The notes under the pieces are model-generated. The model was not told where the DNA came from. It worked only from the letters and a program-made list of their open reading frames with translations, and searched no databases. A stretch of DNA of 64,000 nt from NCBI GenBank assembly GCA_965240325.2, contig OZ251232.1, forward strand, positions 1,488,001 to 1,552,000, in the 5' to 3' direction. Shown one piece after another: positions 17,188 to 62,818 of the stretch (position 1 is its first letter; the number at the start of each line of letters is the position of its first letter). The DNA is from Rebecca billardiae RCC1528. Its lineage: Eukaryota > Protista > Haptophyta. The translations under genes and the position numbers were made by a program.

Positions 17188-18346
17188 GCACCGCCGCCCA
17201 AGGCATGGTCCGGCCATACTCATACTGTAAGCCGCCACGCTGCCAGCAGCGCCACGCGTCGAACTGGCCGTCATTGCGCGGGGCTCAGGATACTTTTTCG
17301 GACGAAGGTCTTACATACACCGTCGCCAAGACACATCCGCTGCTAGACAATAAGAATTCGCTGCCGGCGTCACGTCGCCGGTAATCATCGGCGTCATATG
17401 GCATATGCGCTGCCGCCTCATGAGGGCAACTGCATGTGACTCCGGACTCGGAGTCACTGGGCGGTCCGCGGACAGCAACGGGCTGATTGCCTGCTTCACT
17501 GAGGAATGAACGGGCCACTCGCCAGTCAGCACCGTAGGCTACTATCGACGGATATCCCACTGCAACAGATCTATAGGATCTGATCCTATGCGGCTATGCG
17601 GGCAGTATGGCATAGGTCATAGTAGATGAGTTCTCCAGAGCGCCAGCGGCTCAGTTTTGCGCATACGATCATCGGTGTTGCTATATCGTACACACAACTC
17701 CACCGGCTGTCGGCACACACCATCTCCGCCTGCCGCCACGGCCACGGCGGTCGCGCGCGCGCGCGCGCGACCGCGCGCGCGCGCGCGATCCTATGCCATA
17801 GGATCCGCGCCAGGGACGGCTACATAGGATCGGCATGACAGCGTCAGTTGCTCGCCCCTGGCAGCCGAGCGGCGACCCTGGGCACGGACGGCGCCGGCGA
17901 GTGCTCGCGCCGGATGCCCGCGCTGCCGCTCGCACCGCCGCCCACGCCGCCAGGCGCGTTGCTGCCCGTGGCACACCGATTCTGGGGCGGGGCGAAGAGA
18001 GGGCAACCGCCATCTACTCGGGCCAATTCTATGATTTAAAGACACAGGCACGAGGGCGCAGCTCTCCTGATTCGTCTGTCGAAGTACTGAATGGAGTTAA
18101 TGGAGGATGTCGGAGCGCGTTGGCCGCGGGTGAGGGAGTCGTCGTAACCGATGCTGATCACACGGTCACTGAGGTAGTAGGCGCCCGGGGATGCCGCTGT
18201 TTTGCAGTCGTCGTCGGCCTTGGTCATCATGTAGTTGCCCGTGTCGTCGTCGTCCGAGGCTGTTCAAGTTGATGCCGTAGTGCAGGTAGTGGATGTGGTC
18301 GCCCGGGCCGGTGTGCGCGGCCTAGTGGCCTTGCCGAGTTGAGGGA

Positions 18347-18464
18347 GTAGTCGCCCTTGCCGTTGAGGAAGTCGTCGTCCTTGCCGTTGAGGAAGTCGTC
18401 GCCCTGGCCGCAGAGGAAGTCGTCGCCCTTGCCGTTGAGGAAGTCGTCGTCCTGGCCGCTGAGG
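18347..18464 (-). repeat. 24-bp tandem repeat, ~5 units (translates as G[KQ][GD]DDFL[NC] on the minus strand)
   Basis: Unit GTCGTCGYCCTKGCCGYWGAGGAA repeated; also present in copy 2. Confidence 0.9.
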
Positions 18465-18517
18465 GTGCCTGCGCTGCCCAACCGGGCGCGTCTGGCGCGC
18501 CAGCGCCGCGCGCGGCT

Positions 18518-19621
18518 CTACGCCAGCGACTGCGGCGCGGCGGCAGCCAGGTCACGGGGGGGGTCGCCGAGGGACGCGGTGCGAGCCTGCTTGGCCGGCT
18601 TGGCGTCGCTCCCGCCAGCGGAGGAGGGCCCATCCTCCTCCGCCGGCGTGGACGGCTCGGTCGCCGCGCGCTTGCCGGCTGCCGCGGCGCCGGGGGGCAG
18701 GACCAGGCGGTAGTTGGACTCCCCGAGCGCCGGCCTGGCCTGTTGCACCTCGGGCCCGTCCGACGGCGCGGCCGCGGTTGGTGGCTGGGGTGGCGGGATG
18801 GCATCGTCCGAACCCTCCCCCTCGGGCTCCTCCGCCTCCGGGCCGGCGGGGTCCGCCGCCTGTTGGTCGGCCGGCTGAGGAGCAGGGCGGCGCGCAGCGG
18901 CGGGCGGCGCGGGCGGCACAGGCGGCGCGGGCGGCACGCCCCACAGGTTGTGTGGGACGCGGGCGGCGCCGGCGATGCGGCGGCTCGGCTTGAGCGGCGC
19001 GAAGAAGATGGGGTGCTCGGGGTCGATGGGCATGAAACGCAGGCGGAGGAAGATCAGGTTCACACCGCCGGAGTAGATGTTGGTCTCGACGTGCTCACCG
19101 TTGGTCACGTACTTGTTGATGTCGGGCACGATCTGCTCGTAGAGGGCCCTGTGAAACTGCACGAGCGTCATCGTGGGGCTAACCGGGAGCGTGAGGGACA
19201 CGTCCTTCGCCTGGGTTGCGAGGTCGGCCGCCGACAGCGCGAGCATCTCCTGCGTGAGCTCCGTGGTGCACGCCGTGAGAATGTTCGGCATGCACAGGCT
19301 GGTGGCCAGGCGGCGGCAGATGGTCATGTTCTCGAGCACCGAGCCGGTGAAGGAGAAAACGTGCTTATTGCCTTTGGGGTCCTGGGTGAGTCCTGAGAGC
19401 AGTCGCCCGCCTTGCGAGTTGGGCGCCACGTCGCTCAGGCAGCGCGCGCTCAGCTTGATCATCGTCGTGCACATCTGCTGGCCCGCATCCCGCCTGGCGG
19501 TGGGGGTGCTCGGCCGTTCCACCTGCAGCCCGCGCTCGAAGTTGTTGGAAGAGGGGAAGAAGCTCAAGGCGCTCCTGCTGTTGAGACGGTCGCGGAAAAA
19601 GCCGTGCTGGTAAGGGGGCAT
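18518..19621 (-). CDS. element-encoded 367-aa protein of unknown family (globular ~225 aa plus Pro/Ala/acidic tail)
   Basis: Intact ORF from MPPYQHG in both element copies, with synonymous substitutions between copies in the central region. Confidence 0.8.
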   Translation of the reverse strand: MPPYQHGFFRDRLNSRSALSFFPSSNNFERGLQVERPSTPTARRDAGQQMCTTMIKLSARCLSDVAPNSQGGRLLSGLTQDPKGNKHVFSFTGSVLENMTICRRLATSLCMPNILTACTTELTQEMLALSAADLATQAKDVSLTLPVSPTMTLVQFHRALYEQIVPDINKYVTNGEHVETNIYSGGVNLIFLRLRFMPIDPEHPIFFAPLKPSRRIAGAARVPHNLWGVPPAPPVPPAPPAAARRPAPQPADQQAADPAGPEAEEPEGEGSDDAIPPPQPPTAAAPSDGPEVQQARPALGESNYRLVLPPGAAAAGKRAATEPSTPAEEDGPSSAGGSDAKPAKQARTASLGDPPRDLAAAAPQSLA

Positions 19622-21403
19622 GGTGGCCGGTGTGGCGGGCGCGGGGCTGCGGAGGGCCGGGGGGCGGGTGCGGAAGCACTGCGGTGCGAGCGAGGTCGGT
19701 GCTGGTGCCAAAGGCATTTCGGCGCGCGGGGTTGAAATCAAATTTCAAAACCCAGGTCCGGAGTGGCCCCGCCGGTCCCCCGGACCACGGCGGCCCGTCG
19801 TGCGTTTCGGGGGGAGAGGGGTTTGTCGCGAAACGGGCAGGATGGGGAAAAGGGGGGGGGGGGGGGGGGGGGGGGGGCTCGCGGCCGCCGCGGGGAGGCC
19901 GGGACGGGCGCGGTCTCCACCTGAGGGCCGGGCGCTGCTCAGGAAGGAGGGCGGCCCACACTCCGCGTGTCGCTCCCCAGTGCCTCCGCACAGGCACACC
20001 GCAGGTGTTCGCCGTCGTGTCGGGATGAGCATGCGCTTGGCGTCCGCACCCGGGGCCAGTCCTTTCATGGTCAGCAAGCAGGCGGGGGGGGGGCGTGCGT
20101 GTGCAAGCGCGGGTGGATATGTCGTGTCTGCGATATGCGGAGTGTTGGATGCGGGTTGCGCCGGTGCCCCAGGGCACCGGTGAGTGTGTAGCTGTTTCGG
20201 GCACGCCTCGCGAACGCGAGGCGCTGGAAGACATGGCCACTCGTCGTAGCGGGTCGGGCGGGGGGGTTTGGTGGTAAGGATTTTCCGAAAAATCGGCCGC
20301 CGGTTTTTCGGAAAATCGCGGGACTGTGGCGGACGCGATCCATGCCGCACCACGGTATGGCCGCGCCGGGGGAGGACGCGGGACCGGAGGTGCAGCAGGC
20401 CGCAGCTGCGATTGTTGCGTTGATGGGACGGGCGGCGCGGCGGCCAATACCCCGGCCCATGATCCGGGCGATACCCGGATGTCGAGACCGGGGCACAAGT
20501 TCCCGAGCGGGTGCCGTACAGTAGGAGAATCAGCACCTGCTCACACGTAGCGAGCATTGCCCTTGGTCTTGTTCGCACGGGGATCGATCTGGCCCACAGC
20601 TTCGCGATGCTGCGCGCTGTGGGCCAGGTGATGCAGGCTTTCCAGATCGCCGAACTCAAGAGGACTGCTCGCACTGCCAAGGCTTGGGCCTGTACCGCGG
20701 TGGTGCTCGGCGGACCTCGGATCCAAAGCCACAGCTGTGGTTTGACCTCGCGGGCGTACAAGGCAAGACTGTATGGTCGCAAGGCCATCGATGTGAACGT
20801 GTGCACGGCGCCACTCTGCCATGCTTCAACTCGTCTGGGTCGAGCTGAGGGCAATCATTCGTGCCCGGAGCATCTGTCAGGCGCGCGTGCATGCATGCGC
20901 GCCGCGCGCCGCTGCTGCGGCCCGCGGCTACAGCTCCTGTCACCTTAGCAGATATCTAATGTTGACCACCCCTTTGCGCATCCTGAAGTAGGCCGTGGCA
21001 GGTGGGCCTTCCGCGACTGCGCCCATCGTCATCATGTCGCCGTGATCATCTGTCAGCAGCTGATCGTCTGAGAGTCGTCTGCAGCTTGTCAGACTGTCCG
21101 CCCGTCCGGGCCCGGGGCCTCAGGCTCAGGCTGCTTTCGATCGGGCTGGCGCCGAGCTCAAGTGATAATCGTGGGCTCACATGCAGTCACATATCCGGCG
21201 GCGGATGGCAGCATTGAGAGAAACAAGTCTCACTCGCAGGCTCAGCTGATGACCGCCGAGACCAGCAGCGCGTCAAAATCGTCATCAGTAGTAGTACGTG
21301 TAGCATCATCGTCAACGGTCAGCTCATAGTCAAACTGCATCGCTCGACTCGTCCTCAGCCGCCGGTTGCCCCTAGGAGCGGGCGCAGCGTCGCCTTGGCG
21401 CCC

Positions 21404-27303: not shown

Positions 27304-27401
27304 CGGGCCACGCGACGACCCTCGACCGGCCGGGCGGTGAGCAATCAGCGCAGCGGAGCGCGCGCGTCGGCGTCGGCGCCTCGGCGGGGAGTCGGGGAAG
27401 A

Positions 27402-28589
27402 ATGATGTCCAATCTGGCCGGCATGGTGGTCTGTAGGCATCCCCCGTGTGATCACGCCGGATGCACCAAGCAGCCGTCGTTCGGCATGCCGGGCGACGCG
27501 CGCGCCAGCCTTTGCGCTGCGCACAAGCTGCCCAGCATGGTCAATGTGAGGAGCCCCAGGTGTGAGCACGTCGGCTGCACCAAGGTGCCATCATACGGCA
27601 TGGCAGGTGACGCGCGCGCCAGCCTTTGCGCTGGGCACAAGCTGGCCGGGATGGTCGACATGAAGAGCCGCAAGTGCGATCACGCCGGCTGCACCACGCG
27701 GCCTTACTTCGGCATGCCGGGCGACGCGCGCGCCAGTCGGTGCGCTGCGCACAAGCTGGCCGTTATGGTCGACGTGGTGAGCCCCAAGTGTGATCACGCC
27801 CACTGCACCAAGTTGGCGTCGTTCGGCATGCCGGGCGACGCGCGCTCCAGCCGGTGCGCTGCGCACAAGCTGGCCGGCATGGTCAATGTGAGGAGCCGCA
27901 GGTGTGAGCACGCCGGCTGCACCACGCGGCCTCACTTCGGCATGGCAGGTGACGCGCGCGCCAGCCTTTGCGCTGCGCACAAGCTGGCCGGCATGGTCAA
28001 CATGGTGAGCCCCAGGTGTGATCACGTCGGCTGCACCAAGGTGCCATCATACGGCATGCCGGGCGACGCGCGCGCCAGCCGGTGCGCTGGGCACAAGCTG
28101 GCCGGGATGGTCGACGTGAGGAACCGCAAGTGCGATCACGCCGGCTGCACCAAGGTGCCGTCGTTCGGCATGCCGGGCGACACGGGCGCCAGTCGGTGCG
28201 CTGCGCACAAGCTGACCGGCATGGTCGACGTGAAGAGCTTGAAGTGTGACCACGTCGGCTGCACCACGCAGCCTGGCTTCGGCATGCCGGGCGACGCGCG
28301 CGCCACCCGGTGCGCTGCGCACAAGCTGCCTGCCATGACGCGCGTTTACAAGCGCGGGCTGGAGCAGGGCACGAGCACCAAAGTATCGAGCGCCGCCAAG
28401 CGACAGCGGAAGCGCACCGGCAGCACAGCCACTGCCTCAGACGTCTCAGCGCCGCAGCCGCGGGGGCGGTCGCACGACTCGCGGCTGCCGCCTCCGCTTG
28501 AAGCGTGGGTCACAGTGCCCTGCGTCGTCGCATCGGCGCCCCCGCATGTACCTGTGGTGATGGCGAGGCGGGTCGACACTACTGACTAG
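27402..28589 (+). CDS. EsV-1-7 cysteine-rich repeat protein (8 x 38-aa repeats) with C-terminal basic NLS-like tail
   Basis: Eight tandem C-x4-C-x3-P-x-F/Y-G-x-P-G-x6-C-x2-H-K-x2-G-M-V-D/N-V units (114 bp each), a KRQRKR motif, and no introns. Confidence 0.9.
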   Translation: MMSNLAGMVVCRHPPCDHAGCTKQPSFGMPGDARASLCAAHKLPSMVNVRSPRCEHVGCTKVPSYGMAGDARASLCAGHKLAGMVDMKSRKCDHAGCTTRPYFGMPGDARASRCAAHKLAVMVDVVSPKCDHAHCTKLASFGMPGDARSSRCAAHKLAGMVNVRSRRCEHAGCTTRPHFGMAGDARASLCAAHKLAGMVNMVSPRCDHVGCTKVPSYGMPGDARASRCAGHKLAGMVDVRNRKCDHAGCTKVPSFGMPGDTGASRCAAHKLTGMVDVKSLKCDHVGCTTQPGFGMPGDARATRCAAHKLPAMTRVYKRGLEQGTSTKVSSAAKRQRKRTGSTATASDVSAPQPRGRSHDSRLPPPLEAWVTVPCVVASAPPHVPVVMARRVDTTD

Positions 28590-28720
28590 AGTCGTCGACT
28601 CCTGTTACCGGTAGTTCTTCCGCCGGCACTGAGTGCGATCGGACCGCGTCGCTGCGGCCTGATCGACGAATATTCGATGACGACATCCGTGAATAATAAG
28701 ATGATATAGCGCTGAGCTTA

Positions 28721-30635
28721 TGACCGCGTTCCGCGGTCCTTTTCCGTAGAACGAACGTAGTTCGGGGCCCGCGGTGGCGGTGCACCCTCCGTCGCACCCT
28801 CCGTCGCGATCGAGAGTGGGCCCGCCCGGCCGCGAGCCCGGCAGCGAGTAGACTCCAGCGGCGCGCCGCCGCCCGCCGCGCGGCCGGGCGGGCCCATCGC
28901 AGCCGCCGGCGAGGCGCCGATTGTGTACAGTCGAAGTCATGGCCGACTGAGATCGTCGGCACGCGCTGCTGCTGCGAGATCGTCGGCGTCGGCACGCGCT
29001 GCTGCTGCGAGGGCTGCTCGCTCGCCAGCTGACCGAGGCACTCGAGCAAGCCAAGGTATGAGCACGCCTCGTCGCAGCCAGCCAGGGCCTCCATGATTTT
29101 GTACAGCACCTCGCACGCGTCCTGCTGCTGCTGCCCAAACGCCGTTGTCCACCGACAGACCTCCGCGATCGCGTCGTGGAGCGGCTCGAGCAAGCTACGC
29201 GTCGGCCCCACCTCGCTGGGCCACTCGCAGTTGACATGCGCGAGCGCCAGCGAGCGCATGCTCGGGACACGATGGGGTTGGTGGACTGCTCAGCCGCGGC
29301 AGATGTGGCGAGCGAGACGATGGAAGGGCACGCGAGCAGCGCCGCCAGCAGCGAGCCGAGGTAGCACGTGACGCCTAGGTTGAGCGTGCCCAGCAGGCTG
29401 AGCGAGCCGGCCGGGCGCCCCCGCTGCGGCTGTGCTTTCTCTGCAGCGGGCATTTCCCCGTCGAGCGCGGCGAGTGCCGCAAAGCGGCTGCCAGCTGTTG
29501 GGCCGGGTGAGGAGGAGGGAGGGAGCTGGCCTGCGGGGCGCGTGGTGAAGTCGGTGATCAGTCGCGTCGCGCTCCCCCTGCCGATTGCGCCTTCGTCCTC
29601 CAGCACGGTGCGGACCTTGCGAACGAAGTTGTAGATCGACCATTTGGGCACGTTGTACTTCACCGCCGCAGAGGGCACGTCCTGCTTGTGCCTCACGACT
29701 GAGATGGCAGCAGCGATGCTCTGGAGCGTGCTCTTAGCCACCTTCTTCACTGCCCCGGATTCGAGCAGCACGTTCAATACGCGGCGAGCGCGGTCCTCGT
29801 CGGCGTCGCCAGCTGAGTTGTTGTCGCGACGGACCGCCGGGTTGCTTGCACGCCGTCGCGCCCGGGCTGCAGGCGATCGTGCGCGAGCTCGAGCGCGCGG
29901 CGGCGCCGCTATCCGTGCACCAGCTGGCGGGGACGCTCGGCCCGGAGCTCGGAACCAATGAGCGCGCACAGGCTCTCGAGGCGCCCGGCGGCGGCGGCGC
30001 GACAACTGGCTCGCCAGAGGGCAAAAGGCCAATAGCTACTCCCAATTCCCGAAGGCTGATGATGAATACGCACACGTGCGCCTGATGAATATCGATGATA
30101 TTCTGCTCGACCCCGGCGTAGCAGTCCACGAACCATATATACATTACAATGTATGAAAACGAAGCGGTGCAAATGATGTTCTCCAGTATAGTGGATACGA
30201 CCCCGACGAAGCGATTTTATGCCTGCGTGAACCATACATATGAATACGAAGCGCGGTGCAAATGTTCTCCAGTAGTGAATACGACCCCGACGAAGCCAAT
30301 ATATATCGGTTGGTTACTTCGCTGATCCCGTAAGGACGTGCAAAAATAGCCTCAAAGAAGCTGACGCTTGTATTGGACTTGTAACCGTCCTACTTCACAC
30401 AGAAGTGAACTCTCACGCCCGGCCGTCCACGATTGATTAGGGGAATGTCGTGGGCGCGGTTTTTTTCTCCGTGATGCATCTGTAGAGAGGGTCTCAAAAT
30501 TCGAAACTCGGTCTCCGCCAGCCCTAAAAATCGGCCCCCGCGTCCCTTTTTCTTGATCAAAGATCTTTTTGAAACGTGGTTCGGGCCCGCTGGTGCGGGC
30601 TCCACGCTGCGCGCTCCGCCCTGCACCGCGGGCCA
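28721..30635. mobile_element. asymmetric-end DNA element, family X copy 1, carrying an HTH-USP gene fragment
   Basis: End A TGACCGCGTTCCGCGGTCCTTTT at 28721 and end B ...CCCTGCACCGCGGGCCA at 30635. Both ends are shared with 30639-32255 (inverted) and 37866-39161. Flanks are TTA and TAA. Confidence 0.8.
28930..29860 (-). pseudogene. HTH (psq/CENP-B-like) plus ubiquitin-specific protease (C19) N-terminal catalytic fragment, frameshifted and truncated
   Basis: SAAVKYNVPKWSIYNFVRK (HTH_psq-like); GTLNLGVTCYLGSLLAALLACP (USP Cys box); after a frame change near 29265, QQQDACEVL (QQD box). No His box appears before the element end. Confidence 0.7.
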
Positions 30636-30782
30636 TAATGGCCCGCGGTGCAGGGCGGAGCGCGCAGCGTGGAGCCCGCACCAGCGGGCCCGAACCACGT
30701 TTCAAAAAGATCTTTGATCAAGAAAAAAGGGACGGGGGGCGATTTTTAGGGCTGGCGGAGACCGAGTTTCGAGTTTTTGAGA
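30492..30782. repeat. ~290-bp near-perfect palindrome formed by tail-to-tail junction of two family X elements around TAA (30636-30638)
   Basis: ...CACCGCGGGCCA-TAA-TGGCCCGCGGTG..., with arms complementary over ~145 bp. Confidence 0.95.
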
Positions 30783-32255
30783 TCGCATAGAGAGGTCTAT
30801 TAGGCCGAAAATAAGCGCGTCCAGCTCATTCCCTTAAGTAAAGTGCGATCTGGACGTCAGCTGGACGTGACATTAACGTAACGGTTCGTTACGAGCGCGA
30901 TTTTGTGGGTAGACTCTCGTTCATGTGTGATAGTTTGCCTCCGCCTTGATGAATATGAACTTGGCTTCGCGGCGGTTGGTATCTAGAGTCTAAAACCCGC
31001 AAGCCTTATTGAAAATACCCGCGCAGCTATTCGTTGCCAGCCCATTCCATAGTCACTGACTTACCGAGCTGGCGAGCTCAAAACCTGCCGTCGTCGCAAG
31101 GACGACGTGCTGTGCAGGTTTCTTCTGCTGGGGTGGCGAGCGAGCCTCGACGACTCTTGGTTGGTCCGCAAGGGGGCGCTCGATGGGCAGGTGCGCGTGG
31201 CAAGTGCCGAGTGGCGCCTGGAGCGCGCGTCTGCGGCGGGTCCCGACGGCCGTCGACATCGCGTTCGTGCCCGCTCACTAGTCACTCCGCACGCCCCTGC
31301 CGCGCCCTGTCGATGCCTGCGCGGCCGGCCGGCGCGCGGCCGCGCCGCCGCCGCCGCAGCCGCCGCCCTGTGTTCGGGCTCTCGCAAGCTCGGGGGCAGC
31401 GGCGCATGATGCCGGACTGATCGATCTCGGAGTCTCCGACTTCACCACACGCCCCCCTTGCCATGCCTCTCCGCCAGGGTCTCCCAGAACTCTTCTTCAG
31501 AGCAGGCGCAAGTCGAACTCGGAACTGGCCGCGGCCCCGCGCGCCGTCGGCTCCCCGTGGCTGTCAGCTCCGCGTGGCCTGGGCGCCTGGCGTGCCCAGA
31601 GCTGGCCGTGCCTCTGCGACGCGTGCCGAGCCTGACCGAGGTGTGTCACCCCGTGCACGCGCGGCGCGCGCAAGCACCGGTGCTGCATGGCTGCTCGCAC
31701 CGTGCTCCCTGGCTCGCGGTCAGTCAGCTCGGCCGCGTGGTGCCTGGTGTGCACGTAGAGTCGCGCTCATGCGTCGCTCACGCCTCGCGCCCGCCTGTCG
31801 GCCGTCGCGCAGGCGCGCAGGTCGAACCCTACTGACCTGCAGATCATCTACTCCTGCGCTGCTGGCGTCGCGGCGACGACGGTCAGCGGCAGGCCCGAAC
31901 GAACGGTCGAATCCGCGCGGTCCCGCGCCGTCCGGCTCCCTGGCTGTCAGTCAGCTCCGCCGGTGGCCTGGCGTGCAAGAGTCGCGCTCGTGCGTCGATC
32001 ACGCCGAGTCGCATCCGCCTGTCGGCCGTCGCGCACGCGCAGGGGGTCAGGTAAGGGCCGTCTGTGATGAGGGCAGCTCGGCCGACGACCGACATCCACA
32101 CTCGGCGCACGCCGGCGGCGGCGCGGCGCTGGGGCGGCGCGCCGCTGGATGGAGTCTAGTTACACGTGTACGGGACGACTGCGACGGAGGGTGCACCGCC
32201 ACCGCGGGCCCCGAACTACGTTCGTTCTACGGAAAAGGACCGCGGAACGCGGTCA
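30639..32255. mobile_element. family X copy 2 (inverted), non-coding internal degenerate repeats
   Basis: End B reverse complement from 30639 matches 38880-39161 over ~260 bp. End A reverse complement ending at 32255 has ~75 bp identical to 28721-28796. Confidence 0.8.
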
Positions 32256-32601
32256 TATATTTGAGTTTGTTACGACCGCAGATGAATGAATCCAGATGCA
32301 AGACCGATAACACTTAACAGTGCCAGCATATTATGACATGCATGACTCTGAGTCAGAGTGTCCCGGTCGTATACTACTATACGACGATTCCGGTAGCGTC
32401 AGCAGTAGCGCAGACTGCCGCCATCAGCAAGCCGCCATCATCATATCATCGAAGACATATATATATTGTCACTACTCAAGTCATGCCGCCCATGCGGCAC
32501 GACTGCGGTCTGCGCGGCCGCCGCCCATCCCGCATCCGAACCGGCCCGCGCGCGCCGCGCTGACTGGCTAGCTGACGACTCATCATCATCATCTAATCAT
32601 A

Positions 32602-32723
<122 letters not shown>

Positions 32724-32817
32724 GAGTCTCTCTCGTCACTGACAATTTTATGCCTGGTGACACTGAGCCTGAGGACCGCGCGGCCGTCGTCCAGGATCGT
32801 AGCCTATCGGATCGCGC

Positions 32818-32958
<141 letters not shown>

Positions 32959-33072
32959 TAGTCGTAATTAAGTCGTCACGGACTGTCGTGTAGTTACTGC
33001 TGTGACGCAAACCCGGAGCACCCAGCTGCGGCAGAGGCACCGAGCCGACCGCTGAAGCGCCAGTGAGATGAA

Positions 33073-34344
33073 TCAGGGTCCCCTCGCCCGGAGACCGATC
33101 ATGGCCCAATCCAACCATGCTTGCGCTACTCGCGCCACGTCATGATGCCGATGATGCGGCTGACGCTTGATGCCTGGCGATGATGACAGTCCAGCCAGCG
33201 AAGCCCGTGCTCTCTGACAGCTCTCCGACGAAGACTGTTCCGCCTGCGCCTCGCAGAACCAGTGTGCCTGCGCCCCACCTGGGAGGAGCGTCGCCGGCCG
33301 CCAAAACCCCTGCGGGAGCCAGACCTTCGCCTGCCGGCCGGCGATGATCCCAGCCTCAGAGAGCCCGCTGACGCCTGACACGAACACGCGCGCATGCGCA
33401 AAGTCAGCGATGATCTGCAGCACGGAGGAGTTGCGCGGGAGGAGCGTGTAATTCGCCGTGTCCCCATCACCAGCCATACTAGTATGATCGAAGTAACGCG
33501 CAGGATCGCCATCCGAGTGCACATACACGGGGCTGCCAGGGTGCGTCTGCTGGATGCGTCGCAGGACGTGGGGCAGCTCACGAGCGGCTCGGGCGAGCAT
33601 CTTTGGCCGCGTGGTGCGCTCGTCCCACCTGTTTTCCTCAAGCGCGTCTCCCAGTCGCACGTGCGCGACGATGGCGTCTGCCGGGAGCCGGCGCTCAGGA
33701 ATCAGACCGCGCGCGGCGTTCGCAAATGCCTCCATGTTGTGCAGCGCCTTCCGTCTCCGCTCGGGGACGCGCACGTCCAGGAGCGATTCCATTGAGCTCC
33801 ACGCGCTCACCAGTGCCATCGTCACGTTCGCTGGCGGGCAACGATCCCCACTCGCCCGGGCGTGCGAGTGAACCCCCGAGGCAAGGTCGGACACCGGGAC
33901 AATGCTGTTAGCCATGCCGAGATGCGGCAGGCCGCCCAGGCCGTTTTCGAAGCGCCGGACGACCTGACGGACTGCGGCCGCCACCTCGGTGTGTTCGTCT
34001 TTGTCAAGATGGCTTATCTTCCAGGAGCTGGCGTGGGTCTCCATGAACACGTCCGCATCGAACACCATGCCCTCCACGCCATGCAACGCTATCACCGAGA
34101 AGAGATTCGTGAGCTGGCTGCCCACGCCGTCATGAAACAGCTGGATGAGGCGGAGAGGAGGTGCATCCGGGTCACACGCGCCGTACGGGTTGATTCTGAT
34201 TCGGTCGCACCAGCACGCCGGTGGCCGAGCGACGAGGAGCAGGACGAGTGCCATCTGCATGCGGTCCAATACCGTCGTCGCCATGCTGACTCTGAATGCC
34301 GACTGGCCGCCAGGCGCCATCCTGAAGTTAGTGAGCACTGTCAC
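33073..34344 (-). CDS. GT-B fucosyltransferase-like glycosyltransferase (GT11/GT23/NodZ-type motifs), intronless; true start uncertain
   Basis: DGVGSQLTN (G.GNQ-like), IVAHVRLGD (HxRxGD GDP-sugar motif), VYVHSD and ARVFVSGVSGLS, plus a hydrophobic N-terminal signal/anchor. Confidence 0.7.
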   Translation of the reverse strand: MTVLTNFRMAPGGQSAFRVSMATTVLDRMQMALVLLLVARPPACWCDRIRINPYGACDPDAPPLRLIQLFHDGVGSQLTNLFSVIALHGVEGMVFDADVFMETHASSWKISHLDKDEHTEVAAAVRQVVRRFENGLGGLPHLGMANSIVPVSDLASGVHSHARASGDRCPPANVTMALVSAWSSMESLLDVRVPERRRKALHNMEAFANAARGLIPERRLPADAIVAHVRLGDALEENRWDERTTRPKMLARAARELPHVLRRIQQTHPGSPVYVHSDGDPARYFDHTSMAGDGDTANYTLLPRNSSVLQIIADFAHARVFVSGVSGLSEAGIIAGRQAKVWLPQGFWRPATLLPGGAQAHWFCEAQAEQSSSESCQRARASLAGLSSSPGIKRQPHHRHHDVARVAQAWLDWAMIGLRARGP

Positions 34345-34638
34345 TGAGCACTTGTAACAGTCATTGCTGCTAAGAGTCGTTCACTCGTTGCACCGAAGGA
34401 ATGATGAAAGGGGGGAGGCACACAGCTCACTGGGCAAGGCTCCTAAGGCAGGCTAGATGCCACCCACATCGAAATGTGGGGAGTGACCGAGTGAGTGGGC
34501 TCTCAGTGAGGGACTCCTTCATCATCGGCGTCGTCGTCAGTGTCACTCGGGCTGTTCATGTTGGCGGTTGGCGGCTCCAACGCCCTACGAAGCTGAAGCT
34601 GAAGTTCGCCACCAGGTCCAGGGCATCGGCCACCGCCG

Positions 34639-34647
34639 TCAGCGCGA

Positions 34648-34679
<32 letters not shown>

Positions 34680-34939
34680 GCTGCATCTCGGCGAGCTCGT
34701 CCTTCGCGTCGAGCACGAGCGAGAAGGCGGTAGAGAACTTCTGCTGCTCGACAAGGGGCAGGGAGTCGCTCACGCGCCCGATCTCGGCGTACAGCTCGTC
34801 CAGGATCTTCGCCATCCCGCGGCGCTTCGAGCTCTTGGACGAGGTGCCCGGGCCGTTCGAGCCGCCGCCGCCGCTGTGCGCACCCGCTGCGGGCGTGTTC
34901 TGCGCCTTGGCGGGCGCCTTGGCGGGAGTGCCATGCGCA

Positions 34940-34974
<35 letters not shown>

Positions 34975-36492
34975 CCCGCTCGTCGGCTGGCGCGCAGTGC
35001 GGCCCGTTGATGAGTCGAGGAGGGCGAGCACGTCCGCGTGCTTGCGCTCGAGCGCCTTGTCGCGTGCTGTCTCGCCCGATCCATCCTTCGCGAGCACGCT
35101 CGCCCCGGCCTCCAGCAGCACCCTGGCCACCTGCGCGCACGCGCGGACGTGGGCCGCAGCAGCGGTGAGCGCCGGGGCACGCGCGGTTCAGCGCGGGCGG
35201 CGGGGCCGCGCGGCCGCCGCTCAGCACGCCGCCGCACCTCTGTCGAGCCATTCGCCGAGGCCGAGTGCAGCGGCGTCGAGCCCACCTTGTTCACGCCGTC
35301 CACAGCCGCGCCATGCTCGAGCAGCCAGCGCGCGGTGTGCGCGCTGTCGCGCACAGCTGCCCAGTGCAGCGCGGTGTGACCGAGCGCGTTGCTCTGCTGT
35401 GCGCCTGCAGTGCGCCGTGCACGAGTGCGCGCGCGCAGCGGCGGAGGGTGCGCGGGAGGGCGCGGGTGAGAGCGGGGCGGCGCGCATGCGCCCGGCGTGA
35501 GCCTTGCAGGCTACGCGCGCACCGAGGAGCCCGACGTCGGCGGCGAGCAGCGCGTCGAGCGTGGCTGTGTCCCCCACCTTGGCGGCCTCCAACCACCGCA
35601 CAGAGGGAGGCGCGTCCGCGGGCACGCGCGGGCCGGGCGAGGCGGAGGAGGAGCTGCCGCCACCCGGGCTGACCGCGCCGTCGCGCGGCTGCCCCGTGCC
35701 CGCACCGCCGCCGGCGGCGGCGAGCTTCGCCTCCGCCGCCTTGGCCCGCTTCGTCGCCTTCTTTCTCCTGTTGCGCGCGGCGTTGGCGCCTCGAGCGCCG
35801 CCGGCACCGCCGCCGCCGCCGCCGCCGCCCCTGCGCATGCCGCGCAGTCCGCCACCAAAGGCGCCGGCGCCGCCCATGAGCTCCATCATCGCGATCATCT
35901 CGGCCATCTCGTCGTCGTCCTCGTCAAAGTCGAGCTCGTCGAGATCGAACCCAGCCCCGCCCTCCATCATCATCGCCATCAGCATGGCTTCCGCGCCGCC
36001 ACCCGCGCCGCGGCCGAGGCCGCCCACCTCGGCGAAGGGCACGCGCGTGCCGTCCGGCATGAGCACCTTGCCGTCCGCGTCGCCCTGCCCGAGGCTCGCC
36101 TTGAGGTACGACTGGAACGAGCGCTGCATCTCTTCGCGCTCGTCGTCGTCGGCCACGTCCAGCCCCTCCATCGCCATCAGCTCGGCAAAGATGTCGCCGA
36201 AGGAGCCGCCGGGGCCGAACATGGCGTCCATGAACTCGTCGATGTCGAAGCCGTCCATGTCCGCCTCGCCGTACTGGTCGTAGCTGCTCCGCTTCGTGCT
36301 GTCGCTCAGCACGGCGTACGCGGCCGAGATCTGCTGGAACTTGGCCGTCGCCTCGGGGTCGGACGCGTTCTTGTCGGGATGGAAGAGCAGCGCGAGCTTG
36401 CGGAAGGCTCGCTTGATGTCATCGTCGCTCGCGCCGCGCTCGACGCCCAGCCTGGCGTACAGGTCGGCGGCGTGCGGGTCGGCAGGCGGCAT
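34639..36492 (-). CDS. DnaJ-domain protein with ankyrin repeats; 3 exons
   Basis: J domain DLYARLGV...[14 protein letters not shown]...[13 protein letters not shown]; ankyrin repeats [18 protein letters not shown] and GETARDKA; GC-run introns ~35515-35396 and ~35238-35132. Confidence 0.9.
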
Positions 36493-36720
36493 CCCCAAGG
36501 CAGCTCGCGCGCACACTCGCGCTTCGCCCGCTGCGGGCACCCGGCCAACTGCTCGTTGGCTCAGCGCTTTTCAGCTTGGCGCGCGCGCGCTCACGCCCCG
36601 GTGAAAAGGCGCCGAGCAGCTTCGCTTTCAGCTTTGCCTTGAATTGCGACCGCCCGGATGCGCGTCACCGGCCGGGGTCCGGTCGACCCCGCGTCCCGGA
36701 GGCGGACCCACGGCCTCAGC

Positions 36721-37377
36721 ATGCCCGCCGCCGCCCCTCGACGCGTGCTGATCATCAGCGTGTTATTGTACAGAGTGCTGCCTCTGGCAGCAGCGACCGT
36801 CCTCCGTGCCCACGGCGCTCGGTCCAGCGTATACAGATGGCCGGACCGGGGGCTCCACGCCATGCGCCCGCCACCTGTCGTCATGCTCACGTTGGCTGAT
36901 GTGGACGAGGGAGATCTCGTCGAGTACACGCTGTCAGAGGCAGAGCGCGCGAGCGTTGATGACGGCAAGCGCCTGGGACTTGGCGCGGTGCACGATGGGC
37001 GCGTTCTACCACTGTGCAAGTGGTCGGCCGAGTCCGATGAATTTCTCTTCGACGAGGACGCCGAGCCGCTCGAGCTCGATGCCGCGACGCGCGTGTTGGA
37101 CATGTCAATGGTCTGGCTCAGCATGAGGCTGGTGGGCGGCGGCATGGGCCCCGGTAACCCGCACGGCGAGGTGTGGGCACGAACGCGCGCGCGCGCGCGT
37201 CGGCATCCAGCCGATGACGCGCATCTCGCGCGAGATCCGCGCAGTGTTGCCCGGCTCTGATTTGTGCGCCGCACGCCCGCGCCGCAGGAGAGTGAGGATT
37301 GCTGGACGCTGGAGGATGGCGCCCTCAGTCCTGACACCCGTGTCGTTGTCCGGCCCGAGCGGGAGGTGTGGTGGTGA
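36721..37377 (+). CDS. conserved algal hypothetical protein, probable bipartite plastid targeting; intron 37171-37287
   Basis: Signal-peptide-like N-terminus followed by an Arg/Ser-rich transit-like stretch. The splice gives ...GMGPGNPHGE|ESEDCW...RPEREVWW*. Confidence 0.75.
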
Positions 37378-37865
37378 CTCTGCTCAGAGCGAGTGCGCTC
37401 CTCGCTGACGGAGGCTGCCTGGATCCGAGAGATGCCTGCGGCTGACAGTGAGACTTTACGATGTTTCTGAATTCCACACCGACGGTCCCGTGCCGCCCCG
37501 GCCGGGCACGTTCGTCGCGGCGGGTGATGCCAGCGGAATCGTCAGCCGCCGGACCGCGCGCGCGTGATGATCCTCGACCTCGTCCAGGCGGAACGAATGC
37601 GGATACCATCCGAGAGAAGTCAGAATCGGATCAGACTCAGGCACGCCGAGTCGGCGTTGCCGCCCTCGCCAGGCAGATGACTACAGTCTACACGGAAACT
37701 AGTACAGTAATTAACAGTTTAAGAGTCGTGCCTAAGTTAGTCCGATTCTTGAGTCATGAGTGATATTTATCGCAACGGCAGCTATGCCTATGCAGCATGC
37801 ACTGTGTCTGGGCGGCTGGGCCACGCACACAGACACAGTACGTACTTAACTCGACGACAGGCTAA

Positions 37866-39161
37866 TGACCGCGTTCCGCGGTCCTTTTCTGCATATAGAA
37901 TCAACGCAGTTGGGGGCCCGCGGTGGCCGTGCAATCGCGGCTCTCCGCCGTAGTGGCAGTTCGCCAGTTGAAGTCGGTTCTGAGATGCCACTGAAGCTAT
38001 TAGTCCGACCGTCCGCCGTCGCCCTGCCTGCGCGACCGCGAGACTCATTCACACTTCACACAATCACAGCAGCAGACCTGAGACCGCACCCGGCACCGGG
38101 ATCGTCAAATCGGACGTCCGTCTGACAACTAGCTGCCAAAATAATGTCCAACTGGCTGATCAGCTCGGATCCGACCCGTCCGCGATCGTGCCATCGGCAT
38201 CGGAATTACTACTAGTAGCTGCCAAACTGTGTCCAACTCTGGCTGATCAGCTCGGATCCGACCCGTCCGCGATCGTGCCGAGTGAGTCGTGCCGCGGAGC
38301 TCGGAGTACTGAAGGAGTCGGGTGTGACAGCAGGGTGCTTTAGCGCTGCGGCCCGTGCCAGCCAACGACCAGACGTACTCTGGCCACTTGACCCGTTGCA
38401 CGGGTGAGTGACCGTACGCCCTGCCTAGTGCCTACCGCGCGCGCCGCACGACCGGCGACTCGGGGTGATGGAGAGCGGATGGCGACAGCAGCAGCAGTCC
38501 TCATGAAGACGATGAAACTGGCGGCACGGGTGCACGAGGTGGCAGGCGAAAGCGCGCCGACGAGACCGCATTTGACACACCTGAGCCGCACGCGCGTGCC
38601 GTCGCCGAGCGGCGAGCGCTGCAAACGCGCAACCGTACCGCGCGCGCCACGACGGCGCGGCACTAGCTGATGCAGGCCGTACTGCCGGCACTGCTTCTGC
38701 GATCATGCGCCACGGTCGCAGCTGACTGCGTGAGCAGCAAGCGGGAGGCGGGTCCGGAGGCACGTGCAGGCGCCGTCCCGCATATCCGCCATCGCCCATC
38801 GTGCCGGGGCACGTCACCTCCGACGATCCGGATGTGGCCCAGTCCGGACGTCACGCGATCCGGGAAGACGAGTACGATTCGCTCGTAACGAACCGTTACA
38901 CTAAAGTCACGGCCAGGCTCACGTCCCGTCCATCGATTAGATATGGAATCAGCTGGGCGCGCTCTTTTTCGGCCTAATAGACCTCTCTATGCGATCTCAA
39001 AAACTCGAAACTCGGTCTCCGCCAGCCCTAAAAATCGCCCCCCGTCCCTTTTTTCCGCCGCCCCCCGTCCCTTTTTTCTTGATCAAAGATCTTTTTGAAA
39101 CGTGGTTCGGGCCCGCTGGTGCGGGCTCCACGCTGCGCGCTCCGCCCTGCACCGCGGGCCA
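37866..39161. mobile_element. family X copy 3, with a TAA target-site duplication
   Basis: TAA (37863-37865), end A TGACCGCGTTCC, then end B CACCGCGGGCCA and TAA (39162-39164). Internal ~65-bp direct repeat at 38128-38192 and 38214-38279. Confidence 0.8.
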
Positions 39162-39221
39162 TAACGTAGTAGTATCACTGTGATCTCGCCTGACTGAGCT
39201 GTGTGCGCCTCTGATTCTTAG

Positions 39222-60174: not shown

Positions 60175-60634
60175 CCGCCCGTCCCGAGAATCGTGGCGGC
60201 CATGCGGATCGGATTTCGCTCCCCCGGACACCCCGGGATGTGATGAACAGTTGGGCCTCCGCGGCAGAAGACATGCGAATCTGCGATTGTTGATCATTGT
60301 CAGATGACTAATTCTATGATTTAAAGACACAGGCACGAGGGCGCAGCTCTCCTGATTCGTCTGTCGAAGTACTGAATGGAGTTAATGGAGGATGTCGCTG
60401 GAGCGCGTTGGCCGCGGGTGAGGGAGTCGTCGTAACCGATGCTGATCACACGGTCACTGAGGTAGTAGGCGCCCGGGGATGCCGCTGTTTTGCAGTCGTC
60501 GTCGGCCTTGGTCATCATGTAGTTGCCCGCGTCGTCGTCGTCCGAGGCTGTTCAAGTTGATGCCGTAGTGCGGGTAGTGGATGTGGTCGCCCGGGCCGGT
60601 GTGCGCGGCCTAGTGGCCTTGCCGAGTTGAGGGA

Positions 60635-60752
60635 GTAGTCGCCCTTGCCGTTGAGGAAGTCGTCGTCCTTGCCGTTGAGGAAGTCGTCGCCCTGGCCGCA
60701 GAGGAAGTCGTCGCCCTTGCCGTTGAGGAAGTCGTCGTCCTGGCCGCTGAGG
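60635..60752 (-). repeat. 24-bp tandem repeat, copy 2
   Basis: Same array as 18347-18464. Confidence 0.9.
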
Positions 60753-60805
60753 GTGCCTGCGCTGCCCAACCGGGCGCGTCTGGCGCGCCAGCGCCGCGCG
60801 CGGCT

Positions 60806-61909
60806 CTACGCCAGTGACGGCGGCACGGCGGCAGCCAGGTCACGGGGGGGGTCGGCGAGGGACGCGGTGCGAGCCTGCTTGGCCGGCTTGGCGTCGCTCC
60901 CGCCAGCGGAGGAGGGCCCATCCTCCTCCGCCGGCGTGGACGGCTCGGTCGCCGCGCGCTTGCCGGCTGCCGCGGCGCCGGGGGGCAGGACCAGGCGGTA
61001 GTTGGACTCCCCGAGCGCCGGCCTGGCCTGTTGCACCTCGGGCCCGTCCGACGGCGCGGCCGCGGTTGGCGGCTGGGGTGGCGGGATGGCATCGTCGGAA
61101 CCCTCCCCCTCGGGCTCCTCCGCCTCCGGGCCGGCGGGGTCCGCCGCCTGTTGGTCGGCCGGCTGAGGAGCAGGGCGGCGCGCAGCGGCGGGCGGCGCGG
61201 GCGGCACAGGCGGCGCGGGCGGCACGCCCCACAGGTTGTGTGGGACGCGGGCGGCGCCGGCGATGCGGCGGCTCGGCTTGAGCGGCGCGAAGAAGATGGG
61301 GTGCTCGGGGTCGATGGGCATGAAACGGAGGCGGAGGAAGATCAGGTTCACACCGCCGGAGTAGATGTTGGTCTCGACGTGCTCACCGTTGGTCACGTAC
61401 TTGTTGATGTCGGGCACGATCTGCTCGTAGAGGGCCCTGTGGAACTGCACGAGCGTCATCGTGGGGCTAACCGGGAGCGTGAGGGACACGTCCTTCGCCT
61501 GGGTTGCGAGGTCGGCCGCCGACAGCGCGAGCATCTCCTGCGTGAGCTCCGTGGTGCACGCCGTGAAAATGTTCGGCATGCACAGGCTGGTGGCCAGGCG
61601 GCGGCAGATGGCCATGTTCTCGAGCACCGATCCGGTGAAGGAGAAAACGTGCTTATTGCCTTTGGGGTCCTGGGTGAGTCCTGCGAGCAGTCGCCCGCCT
61701 TGCGAGTTGGGCGCCACGTCGCTCAGGCAGCGCGCGCTCAGCTTGATCATCGTCGTGCACATCTGCAGGCCCGCATCCCGCCTGGCGGTGGGGGTGCTCG
61801 GCCGTTCCAGCTGCAGCCCGCGCTCGTAGTTGCTGGAAGAGGGGAAGAAGGTCAAGGCGCTCCTGCTGTTGAGACGGTCGCGGAACACGCCGTACTCGTA
61901 AGGGGGCAT
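60806..61909 (-). CDS. element-encoded 367-aa unknown protein, paralogue of 18518-19621
   Basis: Intact ORF of the same length as copy 1. Confidence 0.8.
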   Translation of the reverse strand: MPPYEYGVFRDRLNSRSALTFFPSSSNYERGLQLERPSTPTARRDAGLQMCTTMIKLSARCLSDVAPNSQGGRLLAGLTQDPKGNKHVFSFTGSVLENMAICRRLATSLCMPNIFTACTTELTQEMLALSAADLATQAKDVSLTLPVSPTMTLVQFHRALYEQIVPDINKYVTNGEHVETNIYSGGVNLIFLRLRFMPIDPEHPIFFAPLKPSRRIAGAARVPHNLWGVPPAPPVPPAPPAAARRPAPQPADQQAADPAGPEAEEPEGEGSDDAIPPPQPPTAAAPSDGPEVQQARPALGESNYRLVLPPGAAAAGKRAATEPSTPAEEDGPSSAGGSDAKPAKQARTASLADPPRDLAAAVPPSLA

Positions 61910-62818
61910 GGTAGCCGGTGTGGCGGGCGCGGGGCTGCGGAGGGGGGGGGGGGGGGGGGGGGGGCGGGTGCGGGCACTGCGGTGCGAGCGAGGTCGGTGC
62001 TGGTGCCAAAGGCATTTCGGCGCGCGGGGTTGAAATCAAATTTCAAAACCCAGGTCCGGAGTGGCCCCGCCGGTCCCCCGGACCACGGCGGCCCGTCGTG
62101 CGTTTCGGGGGGAGAGGGGTTTGTCGCGAAACGGGCAGGATGGGGAAGGGGGGGGGGGGGGGGCTCGCGGCCGCCGCGGGGAGGCCGGGACGGGCGCGGT
62201 CTCCACCTGAGGGCCGGGCGCTGCTCAGGAAGGAGGGCGGCCCACACTCCGCGTGTCGCTCCCCAGTGCCTCCGCACTTCGCCGTCGTGTCGGGATGAGC
62301 ATGCGCTTGGCGTCCGCACCGGGCCAGTCCTTGCATGGTCAGCAAGCAGGCGGGGGGGGGGGCGTGCGTGTGCAAGCGCGGGTGGATATGTCGTGTCTGC
62401 GATATGCGGAGTGTTGGATGCGGGTTGCGCCGGTGCCCCAGGGCACCGGTGAGTGTGTAGCTGTTTCGGGCACGCCTCGCGAACGCGAGGCGCTGGAAGA
62501 CATGGCCGAGGGAGGACCGCCTGGCTGGTCCCCAGCTGCTAAAAGATTCATCGAGAGTTCCCATTCAAAATGTGCTGGCGCGCGCGCCATTCATCAATTC
62601 ATCACCTGCGCTGCGCCGAGAATTGAGGCGAAGGACGGCAGACGCAAAAAAACATTTCGCTTCGAGATCGACAGAAGATCAAACTGGAGGCGGAGGGTCG
62701 CCCTCCCATATTTACTCCGTCCGCCGCCTCCCGGAAACTGCCGCCTGTGTCGCGTCAAAGCTGACGTTGGCGTCATCGTCTGCGCCTCGTCCAGACGGCC
62801 GAGCACCCGCCCCGAATC

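Follow-up and report, generated by a model that had tools for sequence, protein, structure and literature searches.

Helitrons are recognized by a 5' TC, a 3' CTRR, insertion between A and T and the absence of target-site duplications, and Penelope-like elements by a partner GIY-YIG endonuclease and a hammerhead ribozyme in the terminal repeat. Other elements live on a retrotransposon partner. The eel UnaSINE1/UnaL2 is the textbook SINE/LINE pair with a common 3' tail, and BARE2 of barley is an LTR retrotransposon that keeps Gag and depends on the Pol of its partner BARE1. To our knowledge, protein-coding parasites of LINEs are rare, with HAL1 as the classic case. This mammalian element ("half-L1") is described as protein-coding and RT-less and as encoding its partner's own ORF1p (Bao and Jurka 2010; PMC3627910). 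The sharing of 3' tails between SINEs and LINEs, with recognition termed "stringent," is the subject of a general statement in PMC5786205. For the Dualen/RandI group (Kojima and Fujiwara 2005), PMC4640811, PMC9977147 and PMC8557442 describe one giant ORF that holds both an AP-endonuclease and an RT, and define Dualen by an AP-type plus a restriction-like endonuclease in one ORF. Its protease module is called Josephin-like in PMC8557442, and very long target duplications are reported for Dualen-4b in PMC9977147.

Here we describe a 2.2-kb element with two near-identical copies in the window, that is, in the whole 64,000-nt stretch of DNA that was analyzed, which belongs to a GC-rich, alga-like genome of 72 Mb. 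An earlier note on this DNA had reported both copies (18025-20238 and 60310-62507) and found their flanks to be unrelated, which we confirm; the copies differ by 35 substitutions over ~2184 aligned bases (1.6%) and by indels in G-runs. The right-hand limits proposed there, however, are mere points at which subfamilies A and B diverge from each other. Subfamily A extends 12 nt beyond 20238 and subfamily B 31 nt beyond 62507, and the true ends are 18025-20250 for copy A and 60310-62538 for copy B. The sense strand of the element is the minus strand of the window, on which the ORF lies. Read from 5' to 3', it comprises a 629-nt leader, a 367-codon ORF, ~440 nt of putatively decayed coding sequence with 24-nt repeats and a ~52-nt tail, as follows:

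18021..18024, minus strand: target-site bases next to the copy-A 3' end, GGCC in this copy (GAC(C/T) in 24/29 copies)
18025..18076, minus strand: ~52-nt 3' tail of copy A, with a 25-mer (18027-18051) that recurs without mismatch at LINE 3' ends
18077..18517, minus strand: 3' region of copy A, with five 24-nt tandem units at 18314-18512
18518..19621, minus strand: 367-codon ORF plus stop, copy A
19622..20250, minus strand: 5' region of copy A, 629 nt
19852-19877: variable poly-C tract (on the plus strand) in the 5' region of copy A
20205-20222 and 20161-20180: perfect hairpins of copy A
20239-20250: subfamily-A 5' terminus, 12 nt
60306..60309, minus strand: target-site bases adjoining the 3' end of copy B (GACT)
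60310..60361, minus strand: 3' tail of copy B
60362..60805, minus strand: 3' region of copy B (24-nt tandem units, 60602-60800)
60806..61909, minus strand: 367-codon ORF plus stop, copy B
61910..62538, minus strand: 5' region of copy B
62474-62491 and 62430-62449: perfect hairpins of copy B
62508-62538: subfamily-B 5' terminus, 31 nt

The constant end of the element, on the left of the window plus strand, reads AATTCTATG and has GAC(C/T) in front of it. Its AAT is invariant among copies and is thus counted as element sequence. The opposite, 5' end reads ...CATGGCC plus the 12 or 31 subfamily-specific nucleotides. In agreement with the earlier note, we found neither poly(A) nor terminal inverted repeats in the element; inverted matches between its two terminal 60-mers reach at most 5 nt. 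Both of the perfect GC hairpins that had been reported near the right boundary exist as well, but they open the 629-nt leader and so belong to the 5' rather than the 3' end of the transcribed strand. One octamer of the constant end, ATTCTATG, matches the CR1 3' repeat ATTCTRTG, but on the antisense strand, and we treated this match as coincidence.

Beyond the single pair known before, 129 matches were found genome-wide for a family-specific 27-mer immediately internal to the tail (control, 0) and 28 for a 26-mer at the 5' (hairpin) end. The family therefore numbers at least 129 copies, which are sharply bounded, lie in unrelated flanks and are spread over most of the 41 contigs. The earlier note was right that this is a mobile element whose gene matches no known transposase, RT or Rep protein; our searches likewise gave no family or homologue for it. 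The 5' end is missing in ~100 of the 129 copies, and all truncated copies retain the constant end; given the position of the ORF on the minus strand, these losses are 5' truncations. Matches at the DNA level, with the plus strand as query, all start at base 1 and either run to full length or stop at variable points (65, 157, 462, 696, 1064, 1080, 1113, 1176, 1214, 1284, 1489 and 1990), and at the protein level there are 33 complete N-domains and 12 copies with a progressively shortened N-terminus. Head-truncated copies are stacked beside older tails. The genomic loci examined held no additional tail or diverged ORF copy, and two metagenome scans for the tail found nothing. Copies of subfamily A are only 0-3 substitutions apart per 2.2 kb, and the family is very young and probably still active. 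Such near-identity, which suggests ongoing activity, is relevant to the annotation and the genome stability of the alga.

Insertion is associated with a short motif. The 3' end is adjoined by GAC(C/T) in 24 of 29 copies and by GRCY in 27 of 29. At the 5' junction, 17 of 29 copies have GAC(C/T) between positions -3 and +13, compared with a background of 8.6% in 4996 control windows (p = 1.5e-11). The resulting short duplications of 4-6 bp centre on GAC(C/T); exact ones, for instance CTGACC, GGGCC, GGACT and AGACT, flank 12 of 29 copies, and ~40% of the copies, including both of those in the window, are without a clean duplication. Thus, the earlier statement that target-site duplications are lacking is correct for the two window copies but fails across the 29. 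A shuffled-pairing control gave a mean of 6.2 duplications against the 12 observed; this control is weak because GAC(C/T) is common to every copy, and hence the background windows were adopted.

The comparison of ends that the earlier note had proposed finds the constant end also at the 3' end of a LINE, an outcome that the note itself had named as contrary to its reading. This LINE has RVT_1 (2.6e-24) and Exo_endo_phos (29.9 bits, cut-off 24.5) domains in a single open frame of 2170 aa, and the frame with APE and RT occurs at C5, C11, C18, C19, C33 and C12. The solved structures closest to this RT are R2 (3e-10) and L1 ORF2p (3e-3). LINE copies become more numerous toward the 3' end, rising from 7 through 10 to 20, and the LINE is thus itself 5'-truncated. 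In all eight checkable copies, the tail 25-mer lies with 0 mismatches on the LINE sense strand, 1.3-2.2 kb downstream of the last LINE probe, where we estimate a chance expectation of about 0.01 matches per LINE copy. Tail sharing with the LINE is accordingly defined by the position and orientation of exact 25-mer matches rather than by base-by-base alignment, and the distance from probe to tail differs (1319-2224 nt) among near-identical LINE copies. A gene-less family of 682 bp (at least 40 copies, 97-100% identity) has only the tail in common with the 2.2-kb element; its version spans ~50-57 nt and is 89-90% identical. A stem in the tail is supported by one compensatory change of a pair, G-C to C-G, and the tail probably folds as a stem-loop. 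By residue count there is little room before the APE in the 2170-aa frame, and the partner looks like a single-ORF element; the APE domain begins ~0.6 kb upstream of the 5.3-kb LINE segment used for comparison with the ORF. On motif reading only, the C-terminal module is cysteine-protease-like and OTU-like in look, and further motifs are RNase H-like. No PD-(D/E)xK motif was seen after the zinc knuckle in the 1768 residues read, which stop ~200 residues short of the C-terminus, and Pfam gave nothing there.

We consider it highly probable that the 2.2-kb unit is a non-autonomous non-LTR retroposon that uses the LINE machinery through the common 3' tail. It has a constant 3' end with variable 5' truncation, shares its tail with a LINE that carries both APE and RT, and encodes neither an RT nor an endonuclease. 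The polarity of truncation, the short duplications, the non-Helitron termini and the end shared with the LINE together argue for target-primed reverse transcription. We infer that the LINE protein acts in trans: it would bind the tail and nick the DNA after GAC(C/T), and the element RNA would be copied by target-primed reverse transcription. Such a scheme would account for a 3' end that stays constant, for 5' truncation at random points, for target duplications of 4-6 bp and for the stacked head-truncated copies. The element RNA itself is probably a Pol II product, because the element contains TTTT runs, which would stop Pol III, and because the 367-codon ORF has a good start context; the leader may have promoter activity.

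The 367-residue ORF product consists of a structured N-terminal part (~1-225) and a Pro/Ala-rich C-terminal part. GC content is 0.91 at the third codon positions and 0.47 at the second, a coding-like pattern that reveals a true coding origin. High GC3 extends beyond the stop codon, with two changes of frame, as expected if the ~440-nt 3' region is decayed former coding sequence. Among 29 copies, 24 keep the ORF open, and both subfamilies have open copies. The earlier note had described it as intact with coding-like conservation; it is indeed present in both window copies, but they do not show such conservation, with 14.5 nonsynonymous and 6.5 synonymous changes between them (dN/dS ~0.8). Between subfamilies A and B, dN/dS is about 0.8-1.0, a comparison that is uninformative and in which selection on the ORF is not visible. 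By reading, 10 of the 11 replacements between A and B in the N-terminal part are conservative. More diverged homologues, in older sister elements, have 37-44% amino-acid identity to the ORF product, and nucleotide identity to the sister elements is 67-68%. The homologues with checkable surroundings, at C7, C14, C29 and C1, lie in sister elements of the same build with a homologous leader upstream and, wherever this could be checked, the same tail, and thus the unit evolved as a transposon lineage. The 26 5'-terminal bases are 88% identical in a sister element, compared with 68% for the remaining leader, and the 5' leader matches just its own family and three sister elements.

Outside this genome, no relatives of the ORF were detectable in protein, family and structure-sequence searches. 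It had no match in Pfam, NCBIfam or the PDB sequences, and a word-index protein search and the ESM Atlas were both negative. Two phmmer hits among 1.84 billion proteins were rejected: in each, the score adds up short matches to the internal repeats of an unrelated protein, in one case a SpaA-type repeat protein. AlphaFold2, given the single ORF sequence, reached a pLDDT of 40. Within the genome there is no intron-bearing or stand-alone paralogue, and the ORF has no protein or DNA similarity to the partner over the 5.3-kb LINE segment.

Several other explanations were weighed against the LINE-dependent retroposon. The window by itself, with only two copies 42 kb apart in the same orientation, could suggest a segmental duplication of a single-copy locus; the family as a whole excludes this, with its 129 or more sharply bounded copies in unrelated surroundings across most of the 41 contigs. 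The earlier note had favored a Helitron- or Replitron-like rolling-circle element, or a new class of DNA element, in which the plus-strand TC is the 5' end and the hairpins are the 3' terminator. Such a reading draws on the absence of inverted repeats and poly(A), the GC hairpins close to one end and the TC that follows AAT at the constant end, but it is contradicted by termini, duplications, truncation polarity and the end shared with the LINE. The element lacks a CTRR end, an A|T target and flanking A/T (the AAT belongs to the element), short target duplications are present, and the supposed terminator is the very end that is lost in ~100 of 129 copies. The constant end is moreover shared, in the orientation of a LINE 3' end, with an RT-encoding LINE, the sole coding element with this end that we found. 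We regard the rolling-circle reading as extremely improbable. Hardly less improbable is an "ORF1-only" internal-deletion derivative of the partner, resembling HAL1, with the 367-aa ORF as the first ORF of the LINE. The 3' tail is that of the LINE, and an ORF-bearing non-autonomous element is the HAL1 layout (PMC3627910). However, neither the N-domain, searched in six frames across the genome (E up to 10), nor the 611-nt leader matched at or near a LINE copy, 5.3 kb of the LINE show no protein or DNA similarity, and a LINE that looks single-ORF has little room before its APE.

With regard to the ORF, a host or other mRNA may have gained the LINE tail by template switching and become a master copy, the ORF being passive cargo in decay that plays no part in transposition. 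We judge this amplified retrocopy unlikely, although with a real chance of being correct. The coding origin apparent from GC3 and GC2, the A-versus-B dN/dS and the coding-type GC3 beyond the stop, with one stop and two frame shifts that suggest a partly broken original gene, all fit it, as does the amino-acid identity among sister elements, which by our estimate is close to the neutral expectation at the nucleotide identity observed. The retrocopy sits less well with the lack of a paralogue in the genome and with the same-build elements that surround the checkable diverged homologues. Furthermore, the 1.1-kb ORF is unbroken where the adjacent 0.45 kb carries three disabling lesions, and uniform decay would predict about 7 in the ORF; it is open in most copies and in both subfamilies, and its N-terminal replacements are mostly conservative. 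By analogy with LINE ORF1, the product could instead be a cis-acting RNA-binding helper, to which we give slightly less than an even chance. Rather doubtful is the fuller proposal that the orphan protein is a new kind of helper, ORF1-like in function, unrelated in sequence and needed in cis, which would make the family "half-autonomous." The element would then supply an RNA-packaging protein, the promoter and a 5' hairpin signal and take only endonuclease and RT from the LINE, and the conserved 5'-terminal hairpins would serve as a second cis-signal.

Known classes were also considered by their hallmarks. Rfam searches with the 2.2-kb element and the 682-bp family (E up to 1) returned neither a hammerhead or HDV-like ribozyme nor a small-RNA head; the 682-bp family also has no tRNA according to ARAGORN, and by eye there is no HDV-like P1 pairing for the 5' end. 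A strict SINE was rejected on the absence of a Pol III head (tRNA/7SL/5S) and the negative Rfam result. A Penelope-like element was rejected since there is no ribozyme match (E up to 1) and the partner combines an AP-type endonuclease with a LINE-type RT.

Overall, the apparent "new element class" resolves to target-primed reverse transcription through a borrowed LINE tail, which is a known mechanism. A little-studied algal lineage harbors a tail-sharing community of a giant single-ORF LINE, a gene-less 682-bp passenger and a gene-bearing 2.2-kb passenger. If the ORF is functional, a passenger protein unrelated to that of the partner would be a natural test of what LINE RNAs need in cis. Compared with described systems, non-autonomous Helitron/Helitron2 elements likewise have no inverted repeats, GC hairpins near one end and gene fragments inside, but differ in termini, target, duplications, truncation polarity and partner enzyme. 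SINE/LINE tail pairs correspond in that the non-autonomous element carries the last tens of LINE bases and in the 5' truncation, short duplications, absence of poly(A) and probable tail stem-loop; unlike SINEs, the 2.2-kb element has no tRNA, 7SL or 5S head, is 2.2 kb long and contains TTTT runs and a 367-codon ORF. The partner resembles Dualen/RandI in its giant ORF with APE and RT, its RNase H-like and protease-like motifs, an RT nearer to R2 than to L1 and its algal host; on the other side, no restriction-like endonuclease was seen in the 1768 residues read, the protease module looks OTU-like rather than Josephin-like, and the target duplications here are 4-6 bp, unlike the very long ones of Dualen-4b. 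HAL1 likewise needs the RT and endonuclease of a LINE and keeps coding capacity in a "non-autonomous" family, whereas the ORF here has no detectable similarity to its partner or to any LINE protein, and the partner apparently has a single ORF. BARE2 is alike in concept, a parasite that makes one protein and borrows its enzymes, but it is of the LTR type and makes a protein homologous to its partner's Gag.

The repeat finder and pairwise alignment bore out two copies at 18025-20238 and 60310-62507, each switching abruptly into unrelated flanks. They differ by 35 substitutions over ~2184 aligned positions, plus G-run length differences. A junction alignment of 29 copies moved the right-hand boundaries proposed in the earlier note: positions 20238 and 62507 are merely the points at which two subfamilies diverge, and subfamily A extends 12 nt further (to 20250) and subfamily B 31 nt further (to 62538). 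The element was correctly described as lacking terminal inverted repeats, as no inverted match longer than 5 nt was found between its terminal 60-mers. Both copies carry a 367-codon ORF on the minus strand, as well as perfect GC hairpins.

Features of the 2.2-kb element in the window
18025-20250, minus strand, copy A
20161-20180 and 20205-20222, perfect GC hairpins of copy A
60310-62538, minus strand, copy B
62430-62449 and 62474-62491, perfect GC hairpins of copy B
18077-18517 and 60362-60805, minus strand, region past the ORF stop with coding-type GC3 signal

Other repeats in the window include a perfect 442-nt inverted repeat (41753-42828; 100% complementary, 192-nt spacer) (possibly a foldback element, possibly an assembly artefact), ~10 tandem 114-nt units of 65-89% identity (27332-28429), and several repeat pairs, some inverted and some direct, 78-206 nt long and 93-100% identical, at 28719-39164 (pairs in and near this region: 28719/32180, 30527-30832/38945-39164 and 39298/39666).

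Across the source assembly (72 Mb, 41 contigs, GC ~67%), a whole-element search yielded 47 matches out of 717 first-look candidates, more than 30 of them full length at 96-100% identity. Because copies of subfamily A differ pairwise by only 0-3 substitutions per 2.2 kb, we consider the family very young. The genome-wide count that the earlier note had called for gave 129 matches to a family-specific 27-mer that adjoins the constant (left) end on its inner side (reversed control, 0) versus 28 to the hairpin-end 26-mer; a family of this size excludes segmental duplication of the window locus. All partial DNA matches start at base 1 of the plus-strand query and stop at scattered positions from 65 to 1990, and a six-frame protein search recovered 33 complete N-terminal domains along with 12 copies progressively shorter at the N-terminus. 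Since the ORF lies on the minus strand, the element retains its 3' end and sheds its 5' end. Thus, the twin hairpins do exist in both copies but are 5'-terminal, and not the 3' terminator for which they had been taken.

The four bases adjoining the 3' end read GAC(C/T) in 24 of 29 copies (GRCY in 27), and the GAC(C/T) motif is found again between -3 and +13 relative to the 5' junction in 17 of them, whereas it occurs in 8.6% of 4996 control windows (p = 1.5e-11). Twelve of the 29 copies are flanked by exact 4-6 bp duplications; the others have additional bases at the junction or no duplication. Extra bases or missing duplications are often seen at LINE 5' junctions. The reported absence of a target site duplication therefore holds for the two window copies, which are both among the unclear ones, but not for the family. 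Every defining feature of a Helitron that we tested came out against the rolling-circle interpretation, these duplications included. Head-truncated copies are stacked beside older tails at four places (contigs C13 and C38, C15:748433-750343 and locus L007), which would reflect re-use of the GAC(C/T) site regenerated by every insertion. Two copies (C3:243006-245167 and C21:707427-709589) are truncated at the identical base and have common sequence past the 5' junction and different 3' flanks; they could represent a chimeric 5' end formed by template switching, or insertion into another repeat. Two further loci (L008 and L020) share 11 identical extra bases, CTGGGCGGACC, past the 5' end, and one may derive from a transcript that began a short way upstream of the other, as in 5' transduction.

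The constant-end 25-mer has 648 matches at ≤3 mismatches, far above the 129 family copies, so further elements carry this tail. One is a 682-bp family, for which 898 first-look candidates yielded at least 40 copies of 97-100% identity and which has only ~50-57 nt of 3' tail in common with the 2.2-kb family (89-90% identity) and no ORF, tRNA or Rfam match. Another is apparently one reverse transcriptase (RT) family of the genome, in which RVT_1 (2.6e-24) and Exo_endo_phos (29.9 bits, cut-off 24.5) share an open frame, with a reported 2170 aa.

Probable partner LINE and 682-bp family
C5:282776-288079 (loci L039 and L062), partner LINE, with the AP endonuclease (APE) at C5:282173-282856
C18:1520701-1521382 (L061:12-693), 682-bp element adjoining a full-length 2.2-kb copy

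Among solved structures, the LINE RT is nearest to R2 (3e-10), followed by L1 ORF2p. Within 1768 residues that form a single open frame, motif inspection pointed to the last part of the AP endonuclease, the RT, a DGS motif of RNase H-like type, a CCHC knuckle and the beginning of an OTU-like Cys motif; Pfam gave no support for the last three. The 7-20 copies are 99-100% identical, some are 5'-truncated, and counts made successively closer to the 3' end give 7, 10 and 20. In all eight copies on contigs covered by the match list, a 0-mismatch tail 25-mer lies on the sense strand 1.3-2.2 kb downstream of the last LINE probe (chance expectation ~0.01 per copy, estimated from 648 matches in 72 Mb). 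These sites lack the 27-mer of the 2.2-kb family and so are not insertions of it. The position and orientation of the exact matches indicate that the LINE shares its 3' tail with both passengers, the 682-bp family apparently being the second. Even in near-identical copies, the spacing between LINE ORF and tail varies by hundreds of bases. Between the passenger tails, one compensatory exchange (G-C to C-G) falls in a stem of CAGG/CCUG plus GAG/CUC; it is a hint, not proof, of a recognised stem-loop. Overall, the 2.2-kb element is very probably a non-autonomous retroposon mobilised by this APE- and RT-encoding LINE, whose enzymes would act on it through the common 3' tail.

The ORF had been described as lacking any recognisable transposase, RT or Rep, and searches of Pfam, NCBIfam, PDB sequences, a word-index protein search and the ESM Atlas were indeed empty. 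The only two phmmer matches (1.84 billion representatives) were rejected as short segments of unrelated proteins summed over internal repeats. Single-sequence AlphaFold2 gave a pLDDT of 40. Four loci of the same genome do encode relatives, 37-44% identical across residues 4-121 and stop-free within the match.

Older sister elements (ORF match; element)
C7:597111-597446; C7:596599-598488
C29:951173-951484; C29:951173-951978
C14:1651732-1652049; C14:1650860-1652049
C1:2111086-2111319; C1:2110554-2111319

A homologous leader (67-68% identical) precedes the match at C7, C14 and C29, and at the loci open to checking (C7 and C1) the exact tail 25-mer follows it; in the C7 element, ~1.4 kb long, the 26-mer of the 5' terminus is present too, at 3 mismatches. 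Thus, leader, ORF and tail have moved as one transposon lineage, whose two termini appear better conserved than its interior.

GC at codon positions 1/2/3 of residues 1-230 (0.58/0.47/0.91) and an A at -3 of the start codon mark the ORF as a real coding sequence. As to its role, a functional helper has a little under an even chance by our estimate, and decaying cargo is a less likely alternative. Between subfamilies A and B, nonsynonymous changes number 14.5 and synonymous ones 6.5 (dN/dS ~0.8, a ratio in which no current selection is visible), with 10 of 11 N-terminal replacements conservative as judged by reading. Coding-type GC3 signal persists past the stop, in frame across 8-residue GDDFLNGK-type repeats (the product of 24-nt tandem units in the "3' UTR") and then in the +1 and +2 frames, and this region appears to be a decayed remnant of the C-terminal part of a formerly longer protein. 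The 1.1-kb ORF has no disabling lesions versus an estimated ~7 predicted from three in the neighbouring 0.45 kb, which, if decay is uniform, argues for selection on the ORF. A candidate 48-nt GT...AG stretch spans the stop codon, and splicing it out would preserve the frame.

LINE passengers with a common 3' tail are well known (PMC5786205). Passengers that code for protein are rare, and those like HAL1 encode the ORF1p of the partner itself (PMC3627910). The data do not support an origin of HAL1 type here: the six-frame search placed no ORF match near any LINE copy in the genome, so the ORF is not the LINE's ORF1. In its size, its host and its accessory modules, the partner LINE is similar to the Dualen group, but the restriction-like endonuclease of that group was not found within the 1768 residues inspected (PMC4640811, PMC9977147, PMC8557442). 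The published haptophyte transposon surveys searched give LINEs in broad terms only (PMC5963040). The LINE-tail passenger is of a known type, from which its unrelated orphan ORF and conserved hairpin leader set it apart.
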